Shown: positions 3,301 to 58,400 of the stretch, piece by piece
Layout of the letters: each line of letters opens with the position of its first letter
Position numbering within the stretch: position 1 is the stretch's first letter
From: Pavona decussata
Taxonomy: Eukaryota
Assembly: GCA_977016875.1 (NCBI GenBank)
Contig: CDRNST010000143.1
Span: 434,001 to 498,000, forward strand
Length of the DNA: 64,000 bases
Direction: 5' to 3'
The notes under the pieces: generated by a model
What the model was told of the DNA's origin: nothing
What the model saw: only the letters and a program-made list of their open reading frames with translations
Databases searched by the model: none
Program-made: the position numbers and the translations under genes

Positions 3301-6300
3301 CACTTTCAATTTCCTGGTTTCTCTACAGTAGCAAAACATTCTAGTTTATCAGTGCCCTCTGAAGAGGACAAGAGCATGTTACCAAACAAAAGCCCCACAC
3401 CAAGCAGGAAAAGTGACAGATCCGAGGGACAGCTATCCAAGTTTGCGCACCTCAAAGAAGTCGTCAGCGGTAAGGATATATGCATTGTACCTGTTCAATA
3501 ACGATTGTAAAAAGCTAATGAGGATGATTATTCAAAACGGGGATCACTAGATAAAGAGTGATTATCATTCTCTCAGTAAAGGTCTTGTTTTCATTCCTGC
3601 TATGTGTTCATTCACACCAAAGCAAACTTTATGGCGGGACCAGTTTAGACTTTCGATATCAATGAACAGCTTTTACGGGTTCATTGACTTTAAAGGTAGC
3701 AGGAGACAGCTAATCTGACCACAACTTACTACGGCAATAAAATAACAATATTTATGATATGTAATGCATGAAAGATAATGGTGATGATGACAATGGTGAC
3801 GAGTAACTGAAAAGGTGTAATATCTACAAAAGAGCAGCTCGTTGCAAAATGTAACAGTGACAGACGTTTTCTATAAATTTGAAGGCCAGTGACAACCTCG
3901 TTCCCGGGCGCTTTTCCCTTGTAAATTGCGAAAAGCACTGGGAATGACATTGGGCCAGTGAGGCCTTTGGAAACCCTATACAAACGATTTTGATTTCAAA
4001 GTTGGACAGAGGTTCTTTTCAGTTATTCCGCCTGCTGAAATAATCGTCCATGTAAACAGACCCTCACCCTTTATTGTAAGTTGTGCAAATTAAAAATAAA
4101 CGTTGATTTTTAATCAGTAATACTCCTTTCCCCTCTGGCATAGTATTGAAATTTACTATTGTGTTGTTGTTGGTTTACACTGCATACTTAAGTCTGCATC
4201 AAATCGGTAAGGCAGCGCCAGTTCCTCTTCAGCAATGAAAAAATCATTGCTGAAAAGAATGAGTCCATATGACACGCAGCTTATGCTCAGAAGAAGCNNN
4301 NNNNNNNNNNNNNNNNNNNNNNNNNNNNNNNNNNNNNNNNNNNNNNNNNNNNNNNNNNNNNNNNNNNNNNNNNNNNNNNNNNNNNNNNNNNNNNNNNNNN
4401 NNNNNNNNNNNNNNNNNNNNNNNNNNNNNNNNNNNNNNNNNNNNNNNNNNNNNNNNNNNNNNNNNNNNNNNNNNNNNNNNNNNNNNNNNNNNNNNNNNNN
4501 NNNNNNNNNNNNNNNNNNNNNNNNNNNNNNNNNNNNNNNNNNNNNNNNNNNNNNNNNNNNNNNNNNNNNNNNNNNNNNNNNNNNNNNNNNNNNNNNNNNN
4601 NNNNNNNNNNNNNNNNNNNNNNNNNNNNNNNNNNNNNNNNNNNNNNNNNNNNNNNNNNNNNNNNNNNNNNNNNNNNNNNNNNNNNNNNNNNNNNNNNNNN
4701 NNNNNNNNNNNNNNNNNNNNNNNNNNNNNNNNNNNNNNNNNNNNNNNNNNNNNNNNNNNNNNNNNNNNNNNNNNNNNNNNNNNNNNNNNNNNNNNNNNNN
4801 NNNNNNNNNNNNNNNNNNNNNNNNNNNNNNNNNNNNNNNNNNNNNNNNNNNNNNNNNNNNNNNNNNNNNNNNNNNNNNNNNNNNNNNNNNNNNNNNNNNN
4901 NNNNNNNNNNNNNNNNNNNNNNNNNNNNNNNNNNNNNNNNNNNNNNNNNNNNNNNNNNNNNNNNNNNNNNNNNNNNNNNNNNNNNNNNNNNNNNNNNNNN
5001 NNNNNNNNNNNNNNNNNNNNNNNNNNNNNNAAATTGCCAAATATTGGCCTGATAACAAAATTGCCATGTTGCCCTAGTGCCAGCCTTGAAATCAGTTTGG
5101 TTTCTTTAAGCACACATAATGCACGCCTCTTCAGCAAGAGAACTATCAGAAGTACCTGAGTATTGTTTATTGGTACCTTTGTTGTGTCGTCTCCAGGATT
5201 TAAAATGAATGAATGAATGAATGAATGAATGAATGAATGAATGAATGAATGAATGAATGAATGAATGAATGAATGAATGAATGAACTTTATTAATGTGTC
5301 AATAAAATATCTAGGAGAGGGTAAGCCTTCAGCTAATAGGGGACACCTAACTAAGTGTAACTAAGAATCTAGAAACTGTACAATGTATAAAAATTAAAAA
5401 AAGATTGAAAAATATACATATAACTATGTCTATTTAAAATATATCAAAACAGTGACAAAAGATCGAGGACAAAATAATATTGTAAACAGGAAGTCTAGGA
5501 ATTGCATATATGGCAGCCAGTGCAACCATCTTTTAAGAGGCTTGATAAATCACGCTTTCGTATAAATATTTTTATTTATTTATTTATTTATTTATTTACA
5601 GGTTAAAATTAACATAGGCCACTTTATTTTTATAGACCCAACATTCCCTCCATGTACAAAATACAATTTCGTCAGTCATACATTTTTCAAGACAGTTTTC
5701 TGTTTAGGTGCTTAGATTAATCAGCGAGAGAGAGCTGGTTCTCATTTGGCAAGGAGGTGCGCGCGTACGCGTGATCACCTGCGTGGGTCTTGCGTGTCGC
5801 GCATGCTGTTGTTGTTGTTGTTGAAAAACAATATGGCGGATTTAGTTTGCAGTATTTGTTTCCCGATTGTTTTTATGGACTTTCTTTTCTCAGAAGAGGA
5901 ACAAATTCTTTTCAAGGAGTCCGGAGAAGACGAATTTATCTTCATTCCAAGTTGTTGTGTTTTTCTTGGCGGAATTTGGTGAAAATCTGTCGGTATTTTG
6001 TAGAACACATTCCAAAGGATAACTCACCTTACCAGATTTAACCTATACACCGATTGCAGTTTGCATTTGTGGCTCAATGCGAGGCTAGCCCATCAAGAAA
6101 GACTAGGAAAAGATTTACGAGACAAATAAAATGCTTTATACTATATACTCACCGGCCGCCATTTTTGTAGTATAGTAGAAAAATACGCCATGTTCACCAT
6201 CGTTCAAATTCCCGCGCTTTCCGGCCCACGTTCCGCGCTGGAACGAGTGCACTCGGTTCTAGGTCTGGCCGGCCATTTCTGACAATTCATGGAAACGCAC

Positions 6301-9300
6301 GTTCAAATAACTACATTTGTAAAACTGGGCTTAACTAGGGAATACCTCACTCCTAAACCCGTATACCAGACAAGACGAGTGTGTCCCGTACGAGTTCTCG
6401 CGCGCTAAAATCAAATAATCAAGATGACTCAAATGAACACAAGTTGTCCAGCGGACTTTCCAAAACAGAATAGTGCCATGCGCGCTATCATCTTTGCGGT
6501 TTCACCTGTTAATATTTTCATTAACACAAAACTCGAACACTTTTGCTAAATTTCGCTCGCAAGCAGCTGGGAATGTCTTGAAACATGGGTCAAGATTTAG
6601 GCAAAACAAGCAGGCTTCTAAGTAAGAAGTCTATTAGTTTTGGAGGTTTTTTCCATGACAAAACTGAGTCACTGTTCTTGTGTGGTTTCAGGTATTCGCC
6701 GCAAAGGGGGAAGGCGAGGACAGCTTGAAACGAAGAACGATCTCGTGTCCTCTCCGGGTAAGCGAGTTTCCTTTATATCTCACCAAACGTCGGTTTACAC
6801 AGAGTATTTTATTCGGTCAAGTCAGGGCAAGATGCCGAGGTGAAGTGCAATATGAAAGGCTTTAAGGGCACTAGTCGTATTGATAAGCTTAATGCAAGCT
6901 TGCTTCTAATTTGGCTCTCTAGAAAGCATGTTTATTTAGACTTGAATACTAAGCCCCATGTTGTCTGTATTGTAAATCGGCTGGAAATGATATAAACGTA
7001 TATATTGTAGTGGTGTAAGAACTAAGTTCTTATTTTTACTTCATAAAATTGGTGATTTCTGTTACCTACATGTAGTCACTTGTTGTGAAGACGTTTGGAA
7101 TATCATGTAGGGTACCATTATAAACACATGTAGGCTGATGTAGCTAAAACAAAACACACTACACTGTAGGCTTAAGCTTAATACTTATGACTTAAGTTCT
7201 TGCATGTAAGCTTATTTTTGCTTTAAGACTTATGCACTTCTTGGAAGTTGAATGTACCCTTCAAGTTTGCACATTATACGCAAAACCTATTTAAAAAGTT
7301 TCCCAAACATTCAAATTTATAAGTGTATCAAATGTATTCAGTCCCATGTTTCATTTTGCAAAATGATGTCAAAGTAAACAACTCCACAGGCAGTTTCTTA
7401 ATAAAAGTAGCTTTCATTTGCATTTTGACACTAAGATATTTCAGCAGCCCGTGAAGATCGTGCATGTTAAGGGAGATACGCCTTTTGGAGGCAAGTCGTA
7501 ATCAGTTTTTTGACAATAGGGCAAACATGTCTTGGAAAGATTGAAATGCTACATGTATATCAAATGCTGAGATGTAAATGAATTTGAAGGATTTATACTG
7601 TACAAGTATTTGGAATGTGGAAAGTGTTAAGCCATGTTGTTAATTTTTCAATACATTTGTCTGTAAAACTGTTAGAAGCCCTAAAATGTATTGTTATTAG
7701 TACAATCCCTTATACTGTATTAAAGAAGAAGAAAAAGGTTATAGACTGTGGTAACTTATAATTCTATGATTTTTTGAGAATTCGAATTTAGTAAAAGTTA
7801 TTTGATAAAGAATAAATTTCATTTCATTTTATTTAGTGCCAATATTGTTTGTCTTGTTTCTTAAAATGATGGATTTTCTCAACAAAAACGTCTCTTAAAG
7901 TGATGCATTTAAGCTTTATACAATCTAAAGACCTTGTAAGTGAAGAATTGAAGGGATTGGAGCAGGAGAGGCATATACAGTAGTTAATGTGTATTTTAGG
8001 GCTTGAAATTGACCTACAGTGTAGAAGCTTATACAAGAATTTATTTATTTGCTTTTTTTTCCCAAAACCTGACTCCACAATGGTCTGTACGCAAGCAAGA
8101 CAGTATAATTTTCACTTGTCTGTTCTTTTAGCGTAAACAAAAGAAATCATCCAAGCATCAATTCCTCTTTTGGGTGAATTCCTTAAGTTGAAGCCTCCAG
8201 GTCAAAATCTTATAATGGAACAGGCTGTGTTTCTTACATGATACGTATATGTACATATAAACATGTATCCTGTCTGTATGCCAAACCAGAGCTGATTTGG
8301 AGCAAGTCAAATATCAAAACACATGTAAGGCGGAATAGAGATGAGGAAAAGTCAGAATAACAAGTTATTAGAAGTTTAGAAAGCAAAGAGGAGACTATTG
8401 AGAGACTTGGAGAATTTATGCATTTATATTGTGGCTAGTCCTACTTTTTAGTTATCAGTGATGTTTTAATGATAACCTTTTTTATTATCCAGCATACAGT
8501 ATCAAGGTCACATTTATTTTTATGACTTGTGCTTGATAAGATCAAAGAAATTAAAACAAAAGCAACACGAAGAACCAACCTTAGACATTACAAATACGTG
8601 TATATAGATCCTTGTCACATGTGTACTGTATGACTTGTTGTTTTAATCCGGCTGATAATGAATTTAGTGCTAATTAAACTGCATTCTCATCCACTGATAA
8701 TTAGAGAAATAAAGGATTCCATTGAAGTTATGCTAAATACATGTACATGTACAGTATTTACAGTAAAATATAACAATAATATTACAGTATATATTATATA
8801 TTATTTTTAAATATTATTTTCAGGGGGTTTTTGTGCTCAGGAGAATAAATTAAATATACCATAACATGTATCAGTTTTTTTGTATAATTTATAGTTGTTA
8901 GTAATCCTTGCTAAAACTAATTAAAAATTTTTCATAAGCATTATTTTCATATGTCCCTGTTCTGGCAAAGGGGAGATCAATTATTGTTATTATAAATTGC
9001 CTCTGTAAAATTATACTTTAAATTAAAATAATTTACATTTTCACATACAAAATGTACCTGTAAGTGTTACTACTTTCTATGTTTTCATCCATGTCAACTC
9101 TTACTGTACAAAAAAAATGTATTAGGAAAATGACATGTCATGTTTTGAATTCTGTTGTTATTTCGTAACTTTAATTTACCCCCCAAACTGCCAAACTGGA
9201 ATGCAGATAATCAAATATAATCCGACCTGTAAATTAAATTTTAATTCAAATTTCTGTTTCCTCTCTCACCTGTTAAATTCTTTAAAAAAAAAGTATGGAA

Positions 9301-46400: not shown

Positions 46401-49400
46401 AGTGAGACAGTAAAAACAGAAGAAAGTAATATTGTGAACAGCAGCAACACATTCCCACCAAAACATGGGTTGACAGGAAAAGATGACGAAATACAAGATG
46501 GGACGAAAAGACGAGATCGAAGGCGCCCGCAAAATGAAAAGGAACAGAAGAACAGTGTTCCTATAAAACGTAACACATTGCCACAAAAAGATGGTTTGGC
46601 AGGAGAAAATAATGAAACGCAAAACAAGACTGCAGACAAAGATCAGAGTCGCCCAGAGAAGAGAAGTCAAGCAATGAAAAGTGCTGTTGTGAACAGCAAT
46701 GGCAACGCGTTGCAGCAAAATGGTGTGCAGGGTGGTGCAACAGGAAAAGACAGTAGTAGAGAAGATGAGGCTTTTAAAAGAGAACAGATGCATGCGCCCA
46801 GTGGAAGTGAAACAAAGAAAAGCAATGAGAATGGCAATCAAGAACAAAGACACGCACAAAATGAGAGAGAGTTAGTCCAAACACGAACTGCCAAAAGGAA
46901 AAAAAAGAAAACTGTTCACAAAGACGATTTATGGACCAAGGCCATGGAAGATCTCTTGGACAAGAGTCCGGAGGAAATTGTCAATGGCTTGATCTCGGAA
47001 GATTTCCCTTCGCTTGGAAAGAAACAAAAGATGAAAGATGATGCGGTGATCGTTCTTATAAGACTTCTGGCAAAAGCTTGTCATTGTGAATCTGATATCG
47101 GTTTAGAGCAATTCTTTACCTCTTTACAATCATCCTGGATTCTCACTGCTAGACTTGGAGCGTTTCTCGACCAAGCAATCAGGAAGAAATCGAAAGACCC
47201 ACAAATCCAAAGACTGAATTTGGATACAATCAGAGACATAGTAACACTACTCACAGAAGTTTTCAACAGATTCCCGAATTCATGCTCCAATTCACTATTA
47301 GTCAAGTTGCATAAAGCTAGAATGGCTCTTGTAAACTCTGGAACGCAATTAGACGAAGGCGTCTCCTTTGCTCTTCAAGAACTAACAAGACTAAGGAAGG
47401 AAGACAATTCCGCAGGAAGAAAACAACAAAGGGGCAGATCTCCTAGAGTTGGTAGAGTATCAGTTCAGACTTGTTTAGCGTGTTTGTTTGTTTGTTTTTT
47501 GGCCTGTTGTCTGAAACCTTTCACCCTCACAGCCAAATGACCTCAAATAGTAAATGTTGAAGTGATGATTCTAGTTTAAGTCTAGATCTGGGAACGACAT
47601 GTTACGATGTCATCGTTTCAACTAAAGCCGCTCTTCAGCAGTACGTTCCTCTGGTGTTGTTTTCGCAAGAGCATTTACATTCAGATAACGTAATGATTTT
47701 TTGTCTTTTTCGTGAATCTAAGTTCAAAGGCGCTCAAACGATGCGTACATTTAAAAGCGAGAAGTTCGATGCTCATTCAATAATGCTGATTTCTCATGTC
47801 TTGTCAGGGATGATCACCGATGCAAAACAAGACCCTCCCGAGAATTTCCGCCAGTTGAGTGTGATTCCGACCCCTTGTGATATCACTGACGTCAGAAACC
47901 ATGACGAAGGACTCTTTCTCAGAAAGAACAAAGTCAAGGGGAAGTACTACAATGAGGAACATTATTTAGACGTCCAGTTTCGGCTTCTTCGCGAGGACTT
48001 CTTGAGGCCCCTTCGTGATGGCATCCAGCTGTTAATGGACATGCCTACCGCATATCCAAGAGATGATGATCGCTTAAAGGATGTTAGAATGTACGATAAT
48101 GTCAGGATATTGAGCCCGGTATATACATCCAATGGAGTCAGATACAAGGTCAAATTTGACGTTTCAACGTTTGCTGGAGTGCAATGGGAGAACAGTAAAA
48201 GGCTGACCTTTGGATCCCTACTGTGTTTGTCTAAGGACAATTTCAAGAGCTTTACCTTTGCCTCCGTCGCTGACAGAAAGTTGGAGAATGTTAGAAGGGT
48301 AAGGAAGAGAGTTACAGAAATATCTTTCTAACGCTTTTAACTGTTTGTTCCTTGCCAACTATCAAAATAGGATACAAACAAATAATTTAGCATAACCGGA
48401 GGATCAACCTATTCAACAAAGAAATTAGGTAAAAAGGTTAACATCAAGCTTGTTGGCTTGTGAGTTCGACATTTTTCCATGCATGCACTCCCAGAGAATC
48501 AAGTGTATCGATAATTAGACCGACCTTATATAGCCAGCTTTTAAACCATTACCATGCTGGCGATGACTGCTCATACTGCTACACTTGTCTAGCAACTGAT
48601 TCGAACGAGGTTAACATTTGATGTACCGGATCTCGCTTTGAAGAGAGTGCGTAGTCTCTTGGAGGAATTCGACAGCATATTGGTATGAGGTATATTCTTT
48701 GGTTCATCGCTCAGTTTTTTCCTTGTTATTTGCATTTTAGGGGCTGATTGAAGTCCGATTTGTTTCGCCTTCCAATGAAGCTCGACCAAGAACAGGGGAC
48801 ATATGCCAAATGGTTGAATCCATAGCGTTCTTTGAGGCTTACCGTCCAGTGCTGGAGGGGCTAAAAATGATGTCTGCCAGAGATTTCCCCTTCAAGGTAT
48901 AGACAGTTTTAAATACAAGGCTGAAATTGACATGGGGCTAGTATATTTAGGTTTCCCTTGATCTAAAAACAACAAAATCACGTTAAGACAAATAACGAAA
49001 CAATGTAGCGCAAACTGACTCTCGCAAGCGACCCTCTAAAATTTGGGAATTCGTACCTGGCTTAGTTCTTAGTTTAGAGCAAGTTATACTTTTATATTCA
49101 GATTCAATGCTCTCGTTAAAGACCTCCTTCTTTGGTCTCTAAGGTGAGAATTGAATATTTAGGTTTCATTTCAATATAGAAAATGAACTAAAATTTGTCC
49201 TATTTTTAAATTAGAGTTACATAGTGTATGTGAAGAGTGACGATGACGTCAATCCACCAGCCTATCTCAAAAAACATGATCAGCAAGTGGTATTCGACTT
49301 CACTCCTATAATGCCCGGCAAAGCTAAGGAAGAGACCCCCGCGAGGTGAGGAAAGCAGTATAGCCTATGTATTTATCTACAACCCCGCATCATTTCTCAC

Positions 49401-52400
49401 GCATAAGGGCTATTTCATTAGTGCGTGTTGCAAAACAAAATAAAAACAAAAGTAATCATTTTAACCCATTACAACAAAGGTAAGAACAACATAATCCGAA
49501 TCTTAGGGACTGCAAACGATTGCAAGTCATTTCAAAATGATTGGCCTGGTCGAGAAATAATTGCGTTTCTTTAGAAGGTGACAGAGCTTAGTAACGTTAA
49601 CCCAAAGGAAACGCGAAACGGCCTCCTATACTCGACTGAAAACCGCTCTAAATAAAGCCGAAATTGTAAAATTTCTACCATAAATAGTGCATCTGTGGTT
49701 TTTGTGACCCTTTCTAAACGCATACTGTTTTCAAAGTGTGTTGTTTTGAATTGGAAAAAAGGCTGTAATAGGTGGCTCCACCTTGACCCAGCAGTGCAAA
49801 TCGGAAAGATAAAACTTACTTATACGTTTCCAAAAGGGGAAAGGTGCGTACAGTATAGTAAACACCCGCATAAAGGAACAAGTGGATTAAGGACTTCCAA
49901 GCTGAAATTCGTCATTTTAGACACCTCTTATATAAGAACCTTGAAATAAATATATGAAGACTTATTCAGGCTGACCGTGAAAAAAATAGATTCTTAAATG
50001 TGGGTGTTTACTGAATTTGTTATAAATCAGTACTGCCTAAATTCCATTGCTTACTTACTTCTATTCGCCCAATGACAAATAGCCAGAATTACATTGTTGC
50101 AAAAGACCTATTGATACTACAGTTTCATACCTAATTTAATACCAATGAATAATTTGCCTTTATTAGGTTAAGTTGGACGTTTTCGGAAGAAGAGGATAAT
50201 CATTGCGACGCAGAGGTGTCAGGTAAGTTAATAAGAAAGATGCTCCTAACGCAACAGTATTTGAACCAAGTAACGTCAACTTTGATAACTTTGATTACGC
50301 GTACGACGTTGTCCAATTCAGGATTGCTGAGTTAAAAGGGAGAGGATATGAATCCTGAGGTGACCCAAAAGGCCCTCTGTTAGACCAGGAGCCCATTACC
50401 CGGAGAACAAACTCCTATAGACTCGTGTAACGGACCTATTTATCAGCTGGCAGCCCCCCCCCCCCCCCCCCCCTCACCCCATTCGACTAGCGAAGGCCCG
50501 TTTACAGCGCTGCTCTCTGAAAATCCTTTCGCTGCACGAGCGAACCCACTTTCTACGCAGGCTAAAGAGTAACCTGCGATGGACCAGGAAGTCCAGCATC
50601 TCACTGAGGGGCATCATGTCCGCTGAACGGATGGGGATTTATTTACCCGTGTTATGGAAATAGAAGTCGATAAATAACAGCAGTTAATGTAAAACACAAG
50701 CCCTCTACTTTCAATACAGAAACTAATGTGACAGTTTTGGACTTGGCTTCTTGGCCATCAGCAGAGGAACTGGAATTAGATGATTCACAATTCAAAGCCT
50801 TGCAATTGGCGTTGACCAAAGAGTTCGCAATCATTCAAGGACCACCGGGCACTGGAAAGACCTACATTGGACTAAAGGTATTTAACAAAAACTACGACCA
50901 ATACTAAGATTCAGTTCAGTTTAAGCACCTCAGTTTCTCAAGATATTTTTCAATCATTTTAAAAACTCAAACATATGATATGGTAAACGGCAACGTAACT
51001 GCAATCTTTAAACCTAAACTCTCAAAGTCAACCTAAAATTAGCTACTTTTGAGGAAGAAGTCTCAGTTGAAATATTTTCTTACCATAATAAAAATAATGA
51101 AAATAAAAATAGATGCAGACATCAAAAAAGGTTTTCGAAAAAGACATTTTTTCAAAGGAAGGAATTATCTTTATGATAAACCAGATGTCTTCGTGTAGTG
51201 TACAATCACGATCTAATTGTTAAATCAAACAAAAGAAATGTGTAGATTTCCAAAGGGGTGAAGTGTGGAGAAACGAATCGGAAAGTACTGAGTTTCGTGA
51301 TGGTAATGGTGATGTCTTTATATACAGCACATATTACATAGTCTCCTGGCTCCATCAGTTCTTGCATTGATCTCAAACACTCACCAAACCCACACTTGAT
51401 TGGAAAGACAGATGAAATCGGATATTACATTACAACGTTTTCTTCCTTATCCACCAACACAGATTGCCAAGATTCTACTACATAACCAAAACGCTTGGTC
51501 AGCAAACGGAAAGAGTGGTCCTATCCTCGTAGTTTGTTACACTAACCACGCCCTCGACCAGTTTCTGGAAGGAATCCTTGAAGATCATCCAGAGGGAATT
51601 ATTCGAGTCGGAGGAAGAAGCCAGAGCGAGAAAATACAAGAACTCAGCCTTTCTAAATTGAAAAAGGTGACTAAAAGCTCAACAGAATCTTTAAAATGGC
51701 ATGCCAGTAACAGCTATTTTAAATCGGTATAGTTGGTAATAATTAAACGCAGATTGACGGACGAAAATCGGTCCGGAATAATAAATAATCTTTAGTAGCG
51801 CTATAGATTTTTTTGAATCAGGCCGATTTTCACCTCAGGCTAAATCAATAGGTAGGAGGCAGTAGGAGGCAGAGGGTCGAGTGGTTAGGGCGCCGGACTT
51901 GAAATCCGGTGGTCCCGGGTTTAAGTCCCGCTCTGAGCGCTAACTGGAGTTGTTTCTCGGTAGCCCCAAGTTCAACTCCTCGGACGCGCTTGTAAATAGC
52001 CAGCTGGCCTGCCTCCTGCCAGTTTGGATTTCTAACCCATGTTACTTTCAATTTGCATTATTTCTTTATGAAGTTTTATGCTCGGCCCCACTAGCACTTG
52101 TGCTATAAACACTGCCGAGGGTAAATAAAGGTTATGTATGTATGTATCAAAGCAACGGTGAACGAAATCAACCGACGTGTCAATTAAAATTTATATGGGC
52201 TAATTTAAGGACTGGACCTACCATAACGGGGCTAGAAATCGGTACGTGTAAATAATTAGCCTTAAGACTACCACCTTGAGATTCTTTCACAGTTCTTTTC
52301 CAATTATTAATTCAAGGATTTTCGCTTTTTCTACAATTCGAAATAACAACAAACGCAGCCCGCATTGTGCATTAACTGTTCCGAAGAACCCATGGATAAT

Positions 52401-55400
52401 ATGTTATATTTCTTAGAACAACCAGACGTCTAAAAAGTTCCGAAAAGCCTTCGGTGAGATCAAGGGAGAAATGAATGACCTGTCAGAGTTTATTTACCAT
52501 CATGACGAAGTGCTCGAGAAACTTAAAAGAACGGTATTTCACGAAGATGAGCTTAGAGGGTACGCCACGAGCATGACATCGAAGCAGTATGATTCCCTAG
52601 TAAGAGGCTCAAACCGCGCGTCGGAGAAGAGAAGGGAATCTGTTATCCCACAATGGCTAGAGCTTCCTGTACTGCCAACCGACCCATACCAGGACGGTAA
52701 GATATTTTTTTACAGAGTAACCATTTCCGACAAACTAAGAGATCCTTCTGCTACAGCCTACAGCCTAAATCCGGGGGTAATTCTCGTTTTCTCGCTTTCT
52801 CAACCAATTAATTACAAGCCAAATAACCAAAACCAATAGTGACTTTTCTTTCTTTCTTTTTCTTTTTTATTAACTAACTACTGTCATTTACAGCTTTACA
52901 TATTGCGAATAACTAACAGATCACCTTTTCATAGGATAGAGAAAAACTGCCATATACATTAAACACTACAACACACTAAACAGTAGGCAAACAGTTTCTA
53001 GAAATTAATAACTAGATACCGGAAATTTACAAAGATTTTCCTAGAATTGCATCCCATCTTTTCCTGAAAGTTGCGAACTTCCTAAATTGTTTTGCTATAT
53101 TTTTCACGAAGACCACTAGATAGTGACATGCTGCCACGAGTTTTCCAACGCTTGGCTCAAATAACGCGTATCTTTTTTTGATTTTGATTAGCTCATTCTG
53201 TTATCTGCAGCTGCTCTGATTGATCAGTTTATTAACTCTGGGTTTAATTTTTACACGCTTCCTTAAAAACTGATCTCAGTCTAATTAGACCGAATTTATT
53301 AATTCCCAAGTTACCCCAGTCCTCATTTTACCCCACGTCTACAATCTGTATTTTGTTCTTTACCCCTGAGGTAAAAATAATACAAGTGCATTGTTTGTAC
53401 CCTGGTTGGTGTACAACCAAATGTTTTACCATATACAGTTGAAAATTTGAAGTATCATTCAATTGCCTTTCAATTTGGCTTTGCTATGCCATGTTAACGA
53501 TAACCTTAACTACTTTACAAACTGAGAGCCCAGTCTTAAATTTAGTTCTCTTTTTTTTTTTTCAGGTTTTGCTCAACCTCTTGCCATGTTTCCTTTCAAT
53601 GCTGAATGCCAGGGCTTGGAGTATTTTTCACAAGAACAGATAGCCATCCTATCGCCAAATGTCCGACCGGCACCTGGTCCTGATGGGCATTCAGGAGGAT
53701 CATTAAAACTGGAAGGGGAGTCCCATTCATTTATCGACATTCCAAACTTTTCCGGTGGCTGTGCAGATGCCGAAAGATCCATAACGTTGCTTGCATTTGT
53801 TTATCCTTTGGGTGGAAGTGGGCCAATCATAAGCTATCACATTGATGGGTTAGGTGTTCAGCTTGGCTATGAAAAATCCGACAGCGAAATGGGAGTACTG
53901 ACAGCTTCTTTCATTCAAAGAGATCTTATGGCACCAGCTAAACCACTGAGAGCGCCGGTGCTGGCAAATAATGAGTGGAACTTCGTCGGTGCTTCGTACG
54001 ATTCAAACTCTGGAGTAGCACGCCTGTGGCATAATGGTAATGAAGTAACTACTGACGATATCGGAAAAGGCCTTGAGCTGGCGACTCAGTTCCCTATCAG
54101 GTTAGGTGCCTTAGGGAGCTGCCGTCGTGAAAATATCTTTTCAGGTAGAATCTCGCATTTGCATATTTATGATGAAGCACTAACTGCTGAAAACATTCGT
54201 GCGGTGGGAGGAATTTCACAACAGATTGCAAAAGGTTGGTCTCCATTTTATCTGACCATTAAAGTTGAATGTTTTGATAATTACCTTTATTAAAAAAGTG
54301 TATAATAGTTTTTATTGAAAACGGAATCATTGTGTAATGCAATTCCAGGGATATGATTGACTTAGCGGCCATGGTGTATGGGTCACTTTAACATGCCCGT
54401 AAAAAGCGACTATTAAATTTTCTTCTGGTTGTTCTTGCAAAGTGAAATTAGCGTGATCTAGCAATATTTCTTGCTTGTTTTCAATAAAACAATTTTTCCA
54501 CTCACGCTTGTTGGATATAAGCGATGATTATAAAGTAAAGTACCCATGATAGAGATTCCTCTATGTATTATAAGAATAATTTATTTAGCATAAAGGACAA
54601 TACACCTGTATGTCTCGTTGTCATATTCAGAATCTAATCACATGCATTTGCTGTTGCAATAGAGTCATTTGGTTAAAATGGTAACCTTCTTTGAAAAACT
54701 TAACAGAGTTTTCTAAGATCTGCTGGGACATACCATCTGCCAATTAGTAGATATAAATTAAACTGGCGTAAAATGTAATCTAATGGACGGATAAAGGCCA
54801 GCCGCCATCGATCCAACGACTCAAGAATGCTAGGTCTTCGTTCCAACATAGGGCAATGACGAGCTTTGGTAGCCATTGTCAAAGTTTTAAAAGTTATAGA
54901 AGCCACTTAAAAATTGAAATTAAAAAAAATTGTCAAGAGAGGTTATGGTCATTCTCAAATAAGTTTATGCAATTGTCTTTCAAACCCAAGATGTTCAAGG
55001 TTTTAACGGGATTTGAGCCCATTTCGGTGCCATATCAACTCAACTAAGCTGTGAGCCTAATCTATTGGAAACAGGCGAATTGTGAGTTTATATACACGAA
55101 CGTGTAAGATAGTAACTATAATATTAAGCGAATGAAGGAACGAAATAAATATGTGATGAAAATGAAATTATGTTTCATAGAAACCAACAGCTTCAGCGAG
55201 GAACATTCAAATCTGGAAAAAGATGAAGAGATGGACGAAAGCAGCGACATAGAAGGTGAAAGAGGGGAAGAGACAGGAAATAACGGTCAGGGAGGGAAAT
55301 TCCCTGGTTTTACATTTGAAGCTGATGCCATGGAAGATCAAAGAATTCTAGAAATTGACGAAGTTGTCCTGTTTGAGTCCAGACCGTTGGGTGAAGTGAG

Positions 55401-58400
55401 CTCCGATGTTACTCCTAATGGTGCTGAGAGACGAGACCTCAGCGGCGGCTTTCAGTTCCAGAATGCTCACCGAATTAGACAAAAGATCAAACAAATCATT
55501 CGGAGAGAGCTCAAGAACGATGAGATGATGAGCAAGGACGAAGCTACCCAGGTAATTATATGAATGTACGATAACATTAAAAGTTGTAATCATACGCTGG
55601 AAAAAGTGCCTTAGCTTGTGGTAAATTATACCCTAAAAATAACTGCAGTTTTGTTTTCTTTAACTTTTGTTTCTTTTCATTTCAAAATTCATTCAGTCAA
55701 ACAATGACGACCAGAAGACCAAAAAAGGCAAGGAAGCACCGGCTTAGCAAATTTTGTCTGAATGGCCACACTTTATAGTAGGATTTCCCCCCTCTCCCCT
55801 CCCGAATAGAAATGCTTATGTGTTTTACAATGCTTAAATATGAGTTGCGATAAAGTCTGAAAAGAGTCTATTCTTCCAAAATCACCGATACGTAACTCCC
55901 GTTTAAGTAGCGCAAAGTGAATAGGAGCATGACCACTTCACTGCTATTTATTGGACAATTGTTAAAAACTCTATGGTGATCGTTATTTCAGGTTGAGGAC
56001 GTGTGGGAAGTTCATGACACAGCGGATCGCTGGCGCCTGTACCGCAGATGGGTGTATGATGCTCGTGAGAGCTGTTACCAAACTATCTTTCAGTTGCAAG
56101 AAATGTTTGATGACAAGGCAGATGAGCTTCAAGAACTAAGAAATAGGGAAGATTACGAGATCCTTAAAGACGCAGATGTAGTTGGGATGACCACTACAGG
56201 TAGAAGCAATGTTAAACCAGCTCAGCGTTAGAGTTACTAGCCCCAAAGTGCCGTGCTAACCTCTTTCAATCTAGTTACTTTATCGCCTGATACCCAAGTT
56301 GTGGAATCATCTGCCAGCCTCCCTCTGCTCTCCCTCCTATATCAACAAATTTATATCTCATTTAATTAAACTATGCCAATGCCCTAACTAACCCTTTTAA
56401 CAATTAACATGTGTCCTAAATACGGTGCTTCGTCCGCACAACATTTTAACTCCAAACATTTCCTGTTTTTGATTACGTTACTATAACGATTTGTAGGAAA
56501 ACTGTGTTTTGTTTTGTTTTGTTTTTTTATAGTCAGTAGTAATCACAAGTACTTAATAATCAATACAACCAGTATAGTGAGAATGTATCCTCTATTCTTC
56601 CTAGATTCTTCATAAGCCACGTGGATTAAATTTTCCATTAAATTATTGCTTTTAGGTGCTGCGAGGCATCGAAGTCTGTTGCAAGAGTTGCAACCAGTGA
56701 TTACTATTGTGGAGGAAGCCGCTGAAGTGTTTGAGGCACACACGGTTACCTCTTTAACTTCAGGATGCCAACACTTAATTCTGATCGGTGATCATCAACA
56801 ACTCCGTCCCAATCCCACAGTCTACGATCTCCAGAAAAATTACGCTTTGGACGTGTCGCTGTTCGAGAGAATGGTGACCAATGGACTACAATTTGAAAGG
56901 TTGTGCTTACAGCACCGAATGCGACCAGAAATCGCCAAGACGTTGGATCACATATATGTCAACCCAAGACTGCAAAATCACGATAAGGTGCTGAAGTTTG
57001 AAAAGGTTAAAGGCGTGGAACGAAATTTGTTTTTTGTGGACCATAGCAAGAAAGAGGTAATGACGTTTAACTTAACCATGCATCGCATTTACTGAGTTGA
57101 GTTGAGTTGAGTTGAGTTTAATTTTCAATTGTATTATATATATTTCCCTTGTCTAAACGCGTCTGTTACGAACACCTTGAAGTCCAAGTTTAATTTTGCC
57201 TAAACTCCCAAACGTGCAAATATTTCTTGAAACATTGTCACTAATTTGCAGTCAAACTGATTTAGCTAGATCGGCACTAATCACAAAAGAGTAAAATGTC
57301 CCCAGTAAAATCACCAAAGTTACCTACGGTGTAAAAGCCAGCCTACAATTTAGATTTACCTTTGTAGGACAGTGTCAAAGAAGGGAAAAGTAAAGCCAAT
57401 CTTCATGAAGCTAAATTCCTGACAGCCCTATGTCGCTACTTCATTCAGCAAGGTCAGTACAAGCAAGAACAGATTACAGTTCTAGCAGCGTATAGTGGAC
57501 AACTTGTCAACCTGAGGCGAGAGATGTCAAAAGACATGGAGTTTTTTGAGGGCGTGCGTGTCACTGCGATAGACAATTTTCAAGGAGAAGAAAATGAAAT
57601 CATCCTTCTATCGCTTGTTCGCAGCAAGAGGATTGGCTTTCTCAAGATCGCAAACAGAGTCTGCGTTGCGTTATCGCGAGCTCGAAAAGGCTTTTACATT
57701 ATCGGAAATGCCACGCTTTTGTCTGAACAGGACCCTGAGCTCTGGGGGAAAATCATCACAGATATGCGCGAACAAGGAAATCTGGGAACCCACTTAAAAC
57801 TTGTGTGTCAGAATCATCCCCAAAACTTCATTGAAGCATCGAGTGCAGATGATTTCGAGAACGCCCCAGAGGGAGGATGCAGTGAGCAATGCCAGTTCGG
57901 TATGCCTGACTGTGAACACATTTGTCAATCATTCTGTCATCCCATCGATATCGAACACAAAGAGGAATTCGCTTGCCAGATGCCATGCACTAGAAGGTGC
58001 GATAACGGTCATCAATGTCCCAAGATCTGTAGCGAAGACTGTGGCCCCTGTATGGTGAAAGTACCGAAGATCATTCCCGAATGTAAACACGAACAGGAGG
58101 TCCCTTGTTCTATGGATCCCTCTGAATTCAAGTGCAAGCAGATAGTAAAGAAAAAAGCTTTGCCTTGTGGTCATGTGAATAATGCCGAGTGTTCAATGGC
58201 TGCTGATGAAATCAAATGCAAGAAACCCTGTGGTTTGTTAGAGTGTGGCCACCCTTGTCAAGGTAAGAGTTAAAGACCACGACCCGGATGTTGCATAGCC
58301 GATTAACGGTAATCTATGATTAAAAGTTAACCGAGATTTTCAGCTTACTTGTTAAAATTTTTTTAAAATCTAATTTGAAGCTAATAATAAACAAAGGTCA

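Follow-up and report, generated by a model that had tools for sequence, protein, structure and literature searches.

A laminin G-like exon in the regulatory insertion of a stony-coral ZNFX1-type helicase

Introduction

The conserved antiviral protein ZNFX1 is both a helicase and an E3 ligase, and its autoinhibition by the plug helix of insertion 1C was described only in 2025–2026. In the human protein, insertion 1C covers residues 688–978 and consists of an all-helical stalk, a 1Z motif and disordered loops, reported to be without a structural homologue; the plug helix blocks the RNA groove, and the domain maps include no LamG-type domain (PMC13710534; bioRxiv 10.1101/2025.10.14.682297). The plug, or blocking, helix has been placed at residues 828–836 (bioRxiv 10.1101/2025.10.14.682297). 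A folded domain inside an RNA helicase is known from the DEAD-box protein DDX1, which carries a SPRY domain in RecA1, with its motifs about 240 residues apart, and in which this domain is a proposed interaction platform (PMC4555926). Our literature search found no paper joining ZNFX1 with laminin G and none on the architecture of cnidarian ZNFX1. Here, we describe a coral gene of the ZNFX1 type in which an exon for a LamG domain lies within insertion 1C.

Results

A ZNFX1-Type Host Gene

The window, i.e., the whole stretch of DNA analyzed, is 64,000 nt long, and all coordinates are window positions. The host gene is an intact ZNFX1 type, with the ZNFX1 domain PF25396, AAA_11 and AAA_12 matches and helicase motifs I, Ia and II. 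PF25396 is located at 47654–48331, upstream of the helicase core (E 7e-27, 94 bits against a cut-off of 27), and the Pfam matches to AAA_11 and AAA_12 fall in the flanking exons. The UPF1-like SF1 core is present, with a string of 15 residues (letters not shown) and EEAAE:

50839..50862, plus strand: motif I (Walker A), GPPGTGKT, from the translation
51538..51558, plus strand: motif Ia, YTNHALD, from the translation and an AAA_11 match
56712..56726, plus strand: motif II, the deviant Walker B EEAAE, from the translation; the human counterpart is EE1007AA

The exon with motif Ia aligns with an intronless paralogue over 51448–51675, and a cysteine-rich exon at 57524–58273 aligns with the repeated finger region of the same paralogue. 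A paralogue from the same genome matches the ZNFX1 structure PDB 9q9z with an E value of 3.5e-139.

A Phase 1-1 Exon Upstream of the Plug Motif

Between motifs Ia and II, the gene contains the following parts of insertion 1C:

52471..52696, plus strand: "pre" exon, the N-terminal part of insertion 1C, ending in a string of 17 residues (letters not shown); 52471 is the ORF start
53566..54234, plus strand: LamG/ConA-like (Laminin_G_3) exon of 669 nt, phase 1-1, from the translation, Pfam and AF2
55181..55317, plus strand: start of the "post" exon, an acidic linker of 45 residues (13 D/E vs. 3 K/R) leading from LamG to the plug motif
55318..55344, plus strand: EADAMEDQR, counterpart of the plug motif, from the alignment to PDB 9q9z_A
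56001..56201, plus strand: C-terminal stalk exon of insertion 1C, with a string of 16 residues (letters not shown); the limits are the ORF start and the end of a tblastn alignment, not splice sites

Direct reading of the sequence gave an upstream donor CAG GAC G/gtaag at 52696, an exon acceptor tttttttcag/GT at 53566 and a downstream acceptor tttcatag/AA at 55181, the last being the sole phase-compatible AG among the three nearest considered. The donor of the exon itself, AAA G/gttggt at 54234, has the canonical GT but is weaker than the consensus, with T at +3 and G at +4. All four sites are of phase 1, and the predicted skip of the exon is in frame, G and AA joining into a Glu codon. The stretch 53568–54233 translates into 222 codons without a stop. 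On the two sides of the insert, we found PQWLE at 52648–52662 and EADAMEDQR at 55318–55344. An earlier note on this DNA had described a 669-nt exon with phase-1 introns on both sides, placed between motif Ia and EEAAE and flanked by QWL and EAD..R; the splice sites, the open frame and the motif coordinates bear out both parts of that description.

The "pre" and "post" exons alone gave no match to the solved ZNFX1 chain, and the plug was therefore mapped through the intronless paralogue, using an alignment to PDB 9q9z_A with an offset of 87 fixed by the EE of the Walker B motif. In this alignment, EADAMEDQR corresponds to human EADLIQADR, residues 828–836. The LamG domain is thus located in insertion 1C, in the flexible, acidic tether just N-terminal of the plug motif. 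By analogy with the aligned human residues, the coral motif may form a helix and plug the RNA groove. The site within insertion 1C, 45 acidic-linker residues upstream of the plug motif, is new here.

An Intact LamG/ConA-Like Fold

The exon matches Pfam Laminin_G_3 (PF13385) over profile positions 16–150 of 151, with an E value of 1.7e-11 and 45 bits against a cut-off of 27.6. The AF2 model of the domain (pLDDT 91.8, pTM 0.90) shows a ConA/LamG jelly roll of 14 strands, and with the profile match above the cut-off this upholds the intact LamG-like jelly roll claimed from the sequence before. By way of the model, the best fold match was carbohydrate-binding domain 4 of AbnA (5hon_B; Z 20.9, rmsd 2.6, 190 residues), followed by lectin-like jelly rolls (Z about 19), PTX3 (16.9), CBM40 (16) and the LG domains of laminin and neurexin (about 13); pentraxins and LG domains were matched at Z 13–17. 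Foldseek matched the fold with a probability of 1.00. All 23 invariant fold positions of the family are kept, and the alignment has no invariant cysteine. The domain is a disulfide-independent beta-sandwich of the ConA/LamG type.

Two other readings of the domain were rejected. Pentraxins carry the signature HxCx(S/T)Wx(S/T); the match to Pentaxin (PF00354) is partial (profile positions 82–166 of 194, 27.8 bits), the signature is missing and the corresponding strand reads ITLLAFVYP. Clostridial neurotoxins filled the Foldseek list, through the lectin-like N-terminal half of their receptor-binding domains, and these matches, at 10–18% identity, reflect the generic ConA fold and not a relationship to the toxins.

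Conservation and Selection in Coral ZNFX1 Genes

Three loci on the contig, the window copy and its paralogues B and C, have the exon at the same position and with the same phases, and in B and C the exons follow in the order of the window copy, i.e., motif Ia, "pre", LamG, "post", stalk and motif II. The same arrangement was found in seven loci of other coral assemblies: L026, L027/28 (Pseudodiploria strigosa, SRR32085965), L029, L034, L036, L038 and L039. The plug motif downstream of LamG is kept in every LamG-bearing locus, and the "pre" exon is conserved in paralogues B and C and in L026, L027, L029 and L036. An open frame of 222 codons, a domain match above the Pfam cut-off and nine further loci with the exon at the same position of the gene are far beyond what chance would give.

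Between the paralogues, LamG showed pN of 0.25–0.35 against pS of 0.66–0.80, similar to the helicase exons. The dN/dS ratio ranged from 0.11 to 0.37 overall: it was 0.11 between paralogue C and L036 (dN 0.08, dS 0.76) and 0.27–0.37 among close relatives. In comparison with L038, identity is 93.4% for the exon, with one indel of 3 nt, and 85.6% and 90.6% for the introns, with 32–38 gap columns; for L039, the values are 90.4% for the exon and 79.5% for the upstream intron, the sole intron compared. Exon indels among close relatives are all multiples of 3 nt. At E ≤ 1e-40, exons of this type with intact frames formed 105 clusters at 90% identity; one related copy, P0010, is frameshifted. Judged by these sequence comparisons, 53566–54234 is a coding exon maintained by selection in a stony-coral ZNFX1 subfamily.

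The LamG-type domain is absent from the intronless and C263 paralogues, and PF13385 was not found in the 120 best coral ZNFX1-like homologues retrieved with the helicase region of the intronless paralogue. Together with the human domain maps, these support the earlier statement that canonical ZNFX1 has no LamG domain.

Probable Origin by Exon Shuffling

The LamG family comprises at least 126 exons of class 1-1, and its members co-occur with EGF, C-type lectin, CUB, F5/8C, REJ/PLAT, WSC and tectonin domains. The phase pattern recurred in five loci of other species and in the non-ZNFX1 copies L004, L007, L010 and L020. Both the exon class and the presence of relatives in extracellular mosaic proteins agree with the earlier view of the module as one of the extracellular-shuffling type. 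The ZNFX1-embedded copies form one clade (support 98/95) inside this family, and this fits a single capture of a class 1-1 LamG exon into a phase-1 intron by exon shuffling. The clade is about 40% identical to the nearest non-ZNFX1 copies, L005 and L008, whose flanking ORFs had no Pfam match.

Splice Sites and Public Sequences

The donor of the LamG exon is strong in paralogues B and C and in L039 (GTGAGT, GTAATT and GTAGGT) and weak in L038, where it is GTTGGT as in the window copy. All searches of public sequences were run exon by exon. No spliced product with the exon was found among 99 short relatives in public protein collections, which are ORF calls on genomic DNA and all run into intron-like sequence on both sides. 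In a representative library, the only high-identity matches to the exon were short genomic ORF calls, and among the 150 best of 1377 matches no close relative of the LamG domain occurred in a long annotated protein; the exon may therefore be missing from annotated models, or the subfamily from the annotated species. Long library matches were multi-LamG proteins, bacterial proteins or PKD-like proteins, all unrelated, and were rejected as orthologues. As a query, the conserved end of the first exon retrieved one ORF call only.

Discussion

We consider it probable that the LamG exon, captured once and maintained since, adds a further binding surface to the 1C tether beside the plug. The putative surface could be one for glycans or other non-RNA ligands, for a partner protein or for self-association, and its occupancy may tune the autoinhibition, assembly or localization of the helicase, since the domain is tethered to the plug and located in the stretch of 1C through which human ZNFX1 makes polymer contacts. 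The domain might act as a sensor, a gate, an assembly module or a decoy. As the flanking introns are of one phase and allow in-frame skipping, isoforms with and without LamG are possible. The placement before the plug motif hints at a second, non-RNA input to a ZNFX1-type sensor. In a more specific form, for which we see only a slim chance, a non-RNA ligand on LamG would move or free the acidic plug and gate the helicase and its assembly besides RNA; the ligand would be a cytosol-exposed glycan or glycoconjugate, or a viral or symbiont protein. If true, this would be a ligand-gated SF1 helicase made by exon shuffling.

A regulated cassette exon, mostly skipped and included in some tissues or states such as immune challenge, would leave canonical ZNFX1 as the default product and make the LamG-bearing protein a minor isoform. 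The phase symmetry, the weak GTTGGT donor of the window copy and L038, and the lack of an exon-bearing spliced product among the public protein matches examined are in its favor, but the donors of B, C and L039 are strong, and purifying selection equals that on the helicase exons, which implies that the LamG-included form is used. We regard predominant skipping as possible though rather unlikely; it is compatible with an added binding surface, not opposed to it. If the exon is rarely included, its significance drops to that of an alternative isoform.

Alternatively, the domain could mimic an extracellular LamG protein bound by a pathogen or symbiont and report effectors inside the cell, as integrated decoys do in plant NLRs. 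It derives from a family that occurs in mosaic proteins of the extracellular kind, its host helicase is of the immune type and dN/dS is higher between close relatives (0.27–0.37) than over long distances. On the other hand, there is no known effector or paired executor, and at about 40% identity to the nearest non-ZNFX1 copies close mimicry is gone, making such a role improbable.

That a nested gene or another transcript owns the exon is very improbable: prokaryote-style callers do give a stand-alone ORF from an internal Met (MFPFN), but no Met lies close to the start of the domain in paralogue C or its orthologues, the limits of conservation coincide exactly with the splice sites, a signal peptide or second exon is absent nearby, and all ten loci have the exon on one strand, in one phase and at one place between the same two helicase exons across dS > 1. 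A functionless insert, newly exonized or decaying, has the frameshifted relative P0010 on its side and next to no probability, and neutral decay across relatives, raised before as a possible refutation, is excluded, as both are contradicted by dN/dS of 0.11–0.37, frames intact in 105 clusters, an exon conserved above its introns with 3n indels only, and the 23 of 23 fold positions kept.

With a maintained, once-captured LamG exon as the preferred reading, this coral lineage holds a selected, folded domain of the recognition type 45 residues from the plug and amounts to a natural experiment on the re-engineering of 1C. It is a concrete and testable case of an extracellular-type module in a cytosolic immune sensor, adds to the evidence for domain shuffling as a route by which innate immunity diversifies in cnidarians, and defines a gene subfamily that coral immunologists can follow in infection, bleaching and symbiosis data.

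The coral exon resembles class 1-1 LamG and pentraxin-like extracellular modules in that each exon encodes one domain and is bounded by phase-1 introns. It differs in having entered a helicase that is presumably cytosolic and shows no sign of secretion, and in that the captured lineage is monophyletic and lacks an invariant cysteine. Galectins are cytosolic lectins in which a ConA-like beta-sandwich serves as a recognition module in the reducing cytosol; the coral domain resembles them in this fold, and any sugar binding by it is putative. With the integrated domains of plant NLRs, it has in common that a foreign domain sits within an immune-type sensor whose gene family is expanded and fast-evolving. 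The likeness is one of analogy only, as the scaffold is an SF1 helicase/E3 and not NB-ARC-LRR, and the coral domain has no known effector, decoy relation or paired helper.

Like DDX1, the coral gene encodes an RNA helicase with a beta-sandwich domain, a putative interaction module, inserted into RecA1. DDX1, however, belongs to SF2 and has its insert between motifs I and Ia, whereas the coral gene is of SF1 with the insert between Ia and II, inside a preexisting regulatory insertion and adjoining an autoinhibitory element; the DDX1 insert has the SPRY fold in place of Laminin_G_3 and is ancient and universal in eukaryotes. With human ZNFX1 (PDB 9q9z), the coral gene shares the ZNFX1 domain, the UPF1-like SF1 core with its 15-residue string and deviant EEAA Walker B, the very large insertion 1C between Ia and II, the acidic plug motif EAD..(Q/A)(D/Q)R on flexible tethers and, putatively, the cysteine-rich arm of NF-X1 fingers. 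What sets the coral subfamily apart is the LamG beta-sandwich of 222 residues in the pre-plug tether.

A LamG exon in the helicase core of a ZNFX1-type gene

The exons around the LamG exon all belong, on the + strand, to one ZNFX1-type gene, in which the ZNFX1 domain, the helicase core motifs and the plug motif were present when these family features were tested. Pieces of AAA_11 and AAA_12 follow the ZNFX1 domain (Pfam), a cysteine-rich exon for the fingers matches the repeated fingers of a paralogue, and one paralogue has named homologues in Oculina, Montipora, Stylophora and Porites, which places the genome among the stony corals. The LamG exon lies between motif Ia and the deviant Walker B, within the helicase core as the earlier note had placed it.

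Features of the window gene (splice sites read directly)
47654-48331, +, ZNFX1 domain PF25396 (Pfam)
50839-50862, +, motif I, GPPGTGKT (translation)
51538-51558, +, motif Ia, YTNHALD (translation)
52696, +, end of the upstream exon, ...CAG GAC G, then gtaag
53566, +, start of the LamG exon, GT TTT GCT, after a long pyrimidine tract and cag
54234, +, end of the LamG exon, ...GCA AAA G, then gttggt
55181, +, start of the next exon, after tttcatag
55318-55344, +, plug motif, 45 residues past the end of the LamG domain
56712-56726, +, deviant Walker B, EEAAE (translation)

The observation at 53566-54234 holds: on re-reading, the splice sites, phases and frame were as the earlier note had described them, with 222 codons and no stop in the translation of 53568-54233. 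All four splice sites around the exon are in phase 1; a direct junction of 52696 with 55181 would thus also keep the frame, and the suggested skipped isoform is possible on phase grounds. The donor at 54235 is canonical yet weak, with T at +3 and G at +4. This donor varies among copies, being GTTGGT in the window (54235-54240) and in the closely related locus L038 of another coral assembly (about 4743), GTAGGT in a second such locus, L039 (about 4677), and GTGAGT/GTAATT in paralogues B and C, and exon inclusion may thus differ from copy to copy.

Fold of the encoded domain

The 222-codon peptide matched Laminin_G_3 in Pfam (E 1.7e-11, 45 bits, cut-off 27.6) and, partially only, Pentaxin; as the pentraxin signature is absent, the domain is not classed as a pentraxin. 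An AlphaFold2 model built from 16 family members (mean pLDDT 91.8, pTM 0.90, 14 strands) bears out the proposed LamG-like, ConA-type fold. An all-against-representatives structure search returned the matches listed below and Foldseek gave the same picture; the matches, at 10-20% identity, show a generic ConA-fold likeness.

Structural matches of the model
Carbohydrate-binding domain 4 of arabinanase AbnA, Z 20.9, rmsd 2.6 over 190 residues
Clostridial receptor-binding domains, lectin-like jelly rolls, Z about 17-20
PTX3, Z 16.9
CBM40 sialic-acid modules, Z about 16
Laminin, neurexin and agrin LG domains, Z about 13

The family alignment contains 23 invariant positions, all retained in the ZNFX1 copies. 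None is a cysteine, and the fold is thus independent of disulfides and able to form in the cytosol.

Copies in this genome and in other corals

We searched for copies of the exon in the 602-Mb assembly, where the window is C143:434001-498000. The two closest are on the same contig, at 512608-513279 (62% identity) and 1047742-1048389 (50%), each with canonical phase 1 acceptors and donors and a ZNFX1 motif-II exon 3-4 kb downstream. The paralogue survey that the earlier note had called for thus finds the exon, in the same order and phase, in two further ZNFX1 genes of the contig: with the window exons mapped, all three genes share the order Ia, pre, LamG, post, stalk, motif II, fingers, where pre, post and stalk are the exons before and after the LamG exon and that of the C-terminal stalk of insertion 1C. 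The same arrangement was found in other assemblies at L026 (ENA ERZ25067548), L027/L028 (SRR32085965/6, from Pseudodiploria strigosa; PMC12616652), L029, L034, L036, L038 and L039. Phase was read in L026, L027, L029, L034 and L036, and all five are 1-1; in L038 and L039 the splice sites are kept.

In the intron after the LamG exon, L039 carries a Tc5/pogo-type DDE transposase ORF (5472-6737, - strand; PF03221, PF03184) without counterpart in the window, the alignment skipping from L039 position 4952 to 6954. Just 5' of the motif Ia exon, L026:1218-3935 contains ORFs with integrase (rve)/chromodomain, phospholipase A2-like and Pox_VLTF3-like Pfam matches, probably intronic mobile-element insertions.

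Selection on the exon

That the exon is an independent nested gene is very unlikely, since paralogue C has no Met near the start of the domain. No annotated full-length model with the LamG domain was found among database proteins, which may reflect the length-limited search or exon-skipping models.

Neutral decay across relatives, which the earlier note had named as the outcome that would count against its reading, is excluded by dN/dS (0.11-0.37), by exon conservation above that of introns and by intact frames. Among the three paralogues, pairwise pS was 0.66-0.80 (saturated) and pN 0.25-0.35, the ratio of about 0.19 being the same as in the helicase exon at 57524. Paralogue C and its orthologue L036 gave dN 0.08 and dS 0.76 (ratio 0.11), with flanking introns beyond alignment. 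Among the window copy, L038 and L039, dN/dS was 0.27-0.37. Between the window and L038, the exon is 93.4% identical with one 3-nt indel, against 85.6% and 90.6% and 32-38 gap columns in the flanking introns; between the window and L039, it is 90.4% identical without gaps, against 79.5% in the upstream intron, the only one compared. At E <= 1e-40, a search restricted to short proteins gave 105 clusters of exons of this type whose frames are intact; conservation in these is bounded by the splice sites, and their tails resemble intron read-through. The library protein P0010 (188 aa, ENA contig of 922 kb) has a related copy whose frame shifts after NGNEVAALSIG, through pseudogenisation or an error of assembly.

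Probable origin by exon shuffling

The genome contains at least 126 copies of this exon type, about 600 nt each, many of them in tandem, head-to-tail, 1.3-1.5 kb apart. These arrays (L004, L007 and L009-L020 in this genome, G000) represent giant multi-LamG genes or else dense clusters of genes, and their copies are phase 1-1 where read.

LamG exon arrays
C180:885835-947628 and 1299650-1301914
C70:89765-188793
C318:3452277-3466948
C78:2815901-2840178

Outside ZNFX1 genes, the captured exon has its nearest relatives at L008 (C72:2385198) and L005 (C90:569733). Relatives in the public library are parts of mosaic proteins of extracellular architecture, with EGF, C-type lectin, CUB, F5/8C, SUEL lectin, tectonin, WSC, PLAT and REJ domains. 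In a maximum-likelihood tree that also included 13 other genomic copies, the eight copies known to be embedded in ZNFX1 grouped together (UFboot 98, SH-aLRT 95), with C-type orthologues apart from A-type (window copy) and B-type ones, a pattern that fits a single capture followed by gene duplication and speciation. With the phase 1-1 family, the extracellular mosaic relatives and the single ZNFX1 clade, capture by shuffling of an extracellular module, as had been proposed, is well supported.

Position next to the plug motif

In human ZNFX1, the unusually large insertion 1C of the first RecA lobe (residues 688-978) carries, on flexible loops, a short, very acidic helix (828-836) that occupies the RNA groove as a plug and gives way to RNA; in ZNFX1 filaments, 1C is also a site of homophilic contact (PMC13710534; bioRxiv 10.1101/2025.10.14.682297). 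We aligned an intronless paralogue from the coral with the solved structure (chain 9q9z_A) and applied a numbering offset of 87 from the Walker B EE, at which human residues 828-836 read EADLIQADR; the 'EAD..R' landmark of the earlier note is this plug motif. Every LamG-bearing gene keeps the motif in the exon that follows the LamG exon, with similar sequences in L026, L027, L034 and L036. As it follows the LamG domain of the window gene by 45 residues (13 acidic, 3 basic) within 1C, the domain is, judging by sequence, set into the tether on the N-terminal side of the autoinhibitory plug. In the orthologue of another coral, at L026:8369-10060, an open frame of more than 500 residues, mostly glutamate, directly precedes the plug motif; it resembles an acidic tether expanded to an extreme, as judged from the open frame.

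From its position, the LamG domain would add a putative binding surface to the helicase, the occupancy of which could affect plug docking, 1C-mediated assembly or localisation; sensor, decoy and gate are all candidate roles.

In this genome, the remaining ZNFX1 paralogues lack the domain. In the intronless ZNFX1 genes on C51, the corresponding place is taken by about 440 residues of low complexity without a Pfam match, and PF13385 was not listed for any of the 120 top-ranking coral homologues of the intronless gene. A paralogue on C263 (L040:6858-9515; C263:233358-236015) reads as a single open frame that begins where motif Ia ends and runs across the zinc fingers, with a short 1C of about 270 residues and neither intron nor LamG; C263 has three genes of this kind. 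The coral ZNFX1-like protein P0153 (3434 aa, ENA) has about 1200 residues without Pfam match between AAA_11 (516-707) and AAA_12 (1937-2119). The length of 1C is hypervariable among coral paralogues, at about 270, 440 and 1200 residues.

Comparison with known systems

Our full-text search found no paper joining ZNFX1 with a laminin G domain and none describing cnidarian ZNFX1 architecture. The interest of the insertion comes mainly from its site beside the plug helix. Whereas every described ZNFX1 is without a folded beta-sandwich in 1C, the window gene has one. The parallel with plant NLR integrated domains is an analogy. The nearest functional precedent for a domain inserted in a helicase RecA1 is DDX1, in which a SPRY domain, thought to be an interaction platform, splits RecA1 between motifs I and Ia (PMC4555926), although helicase superfamily, insertion site and fold all differ from those of the window gene.
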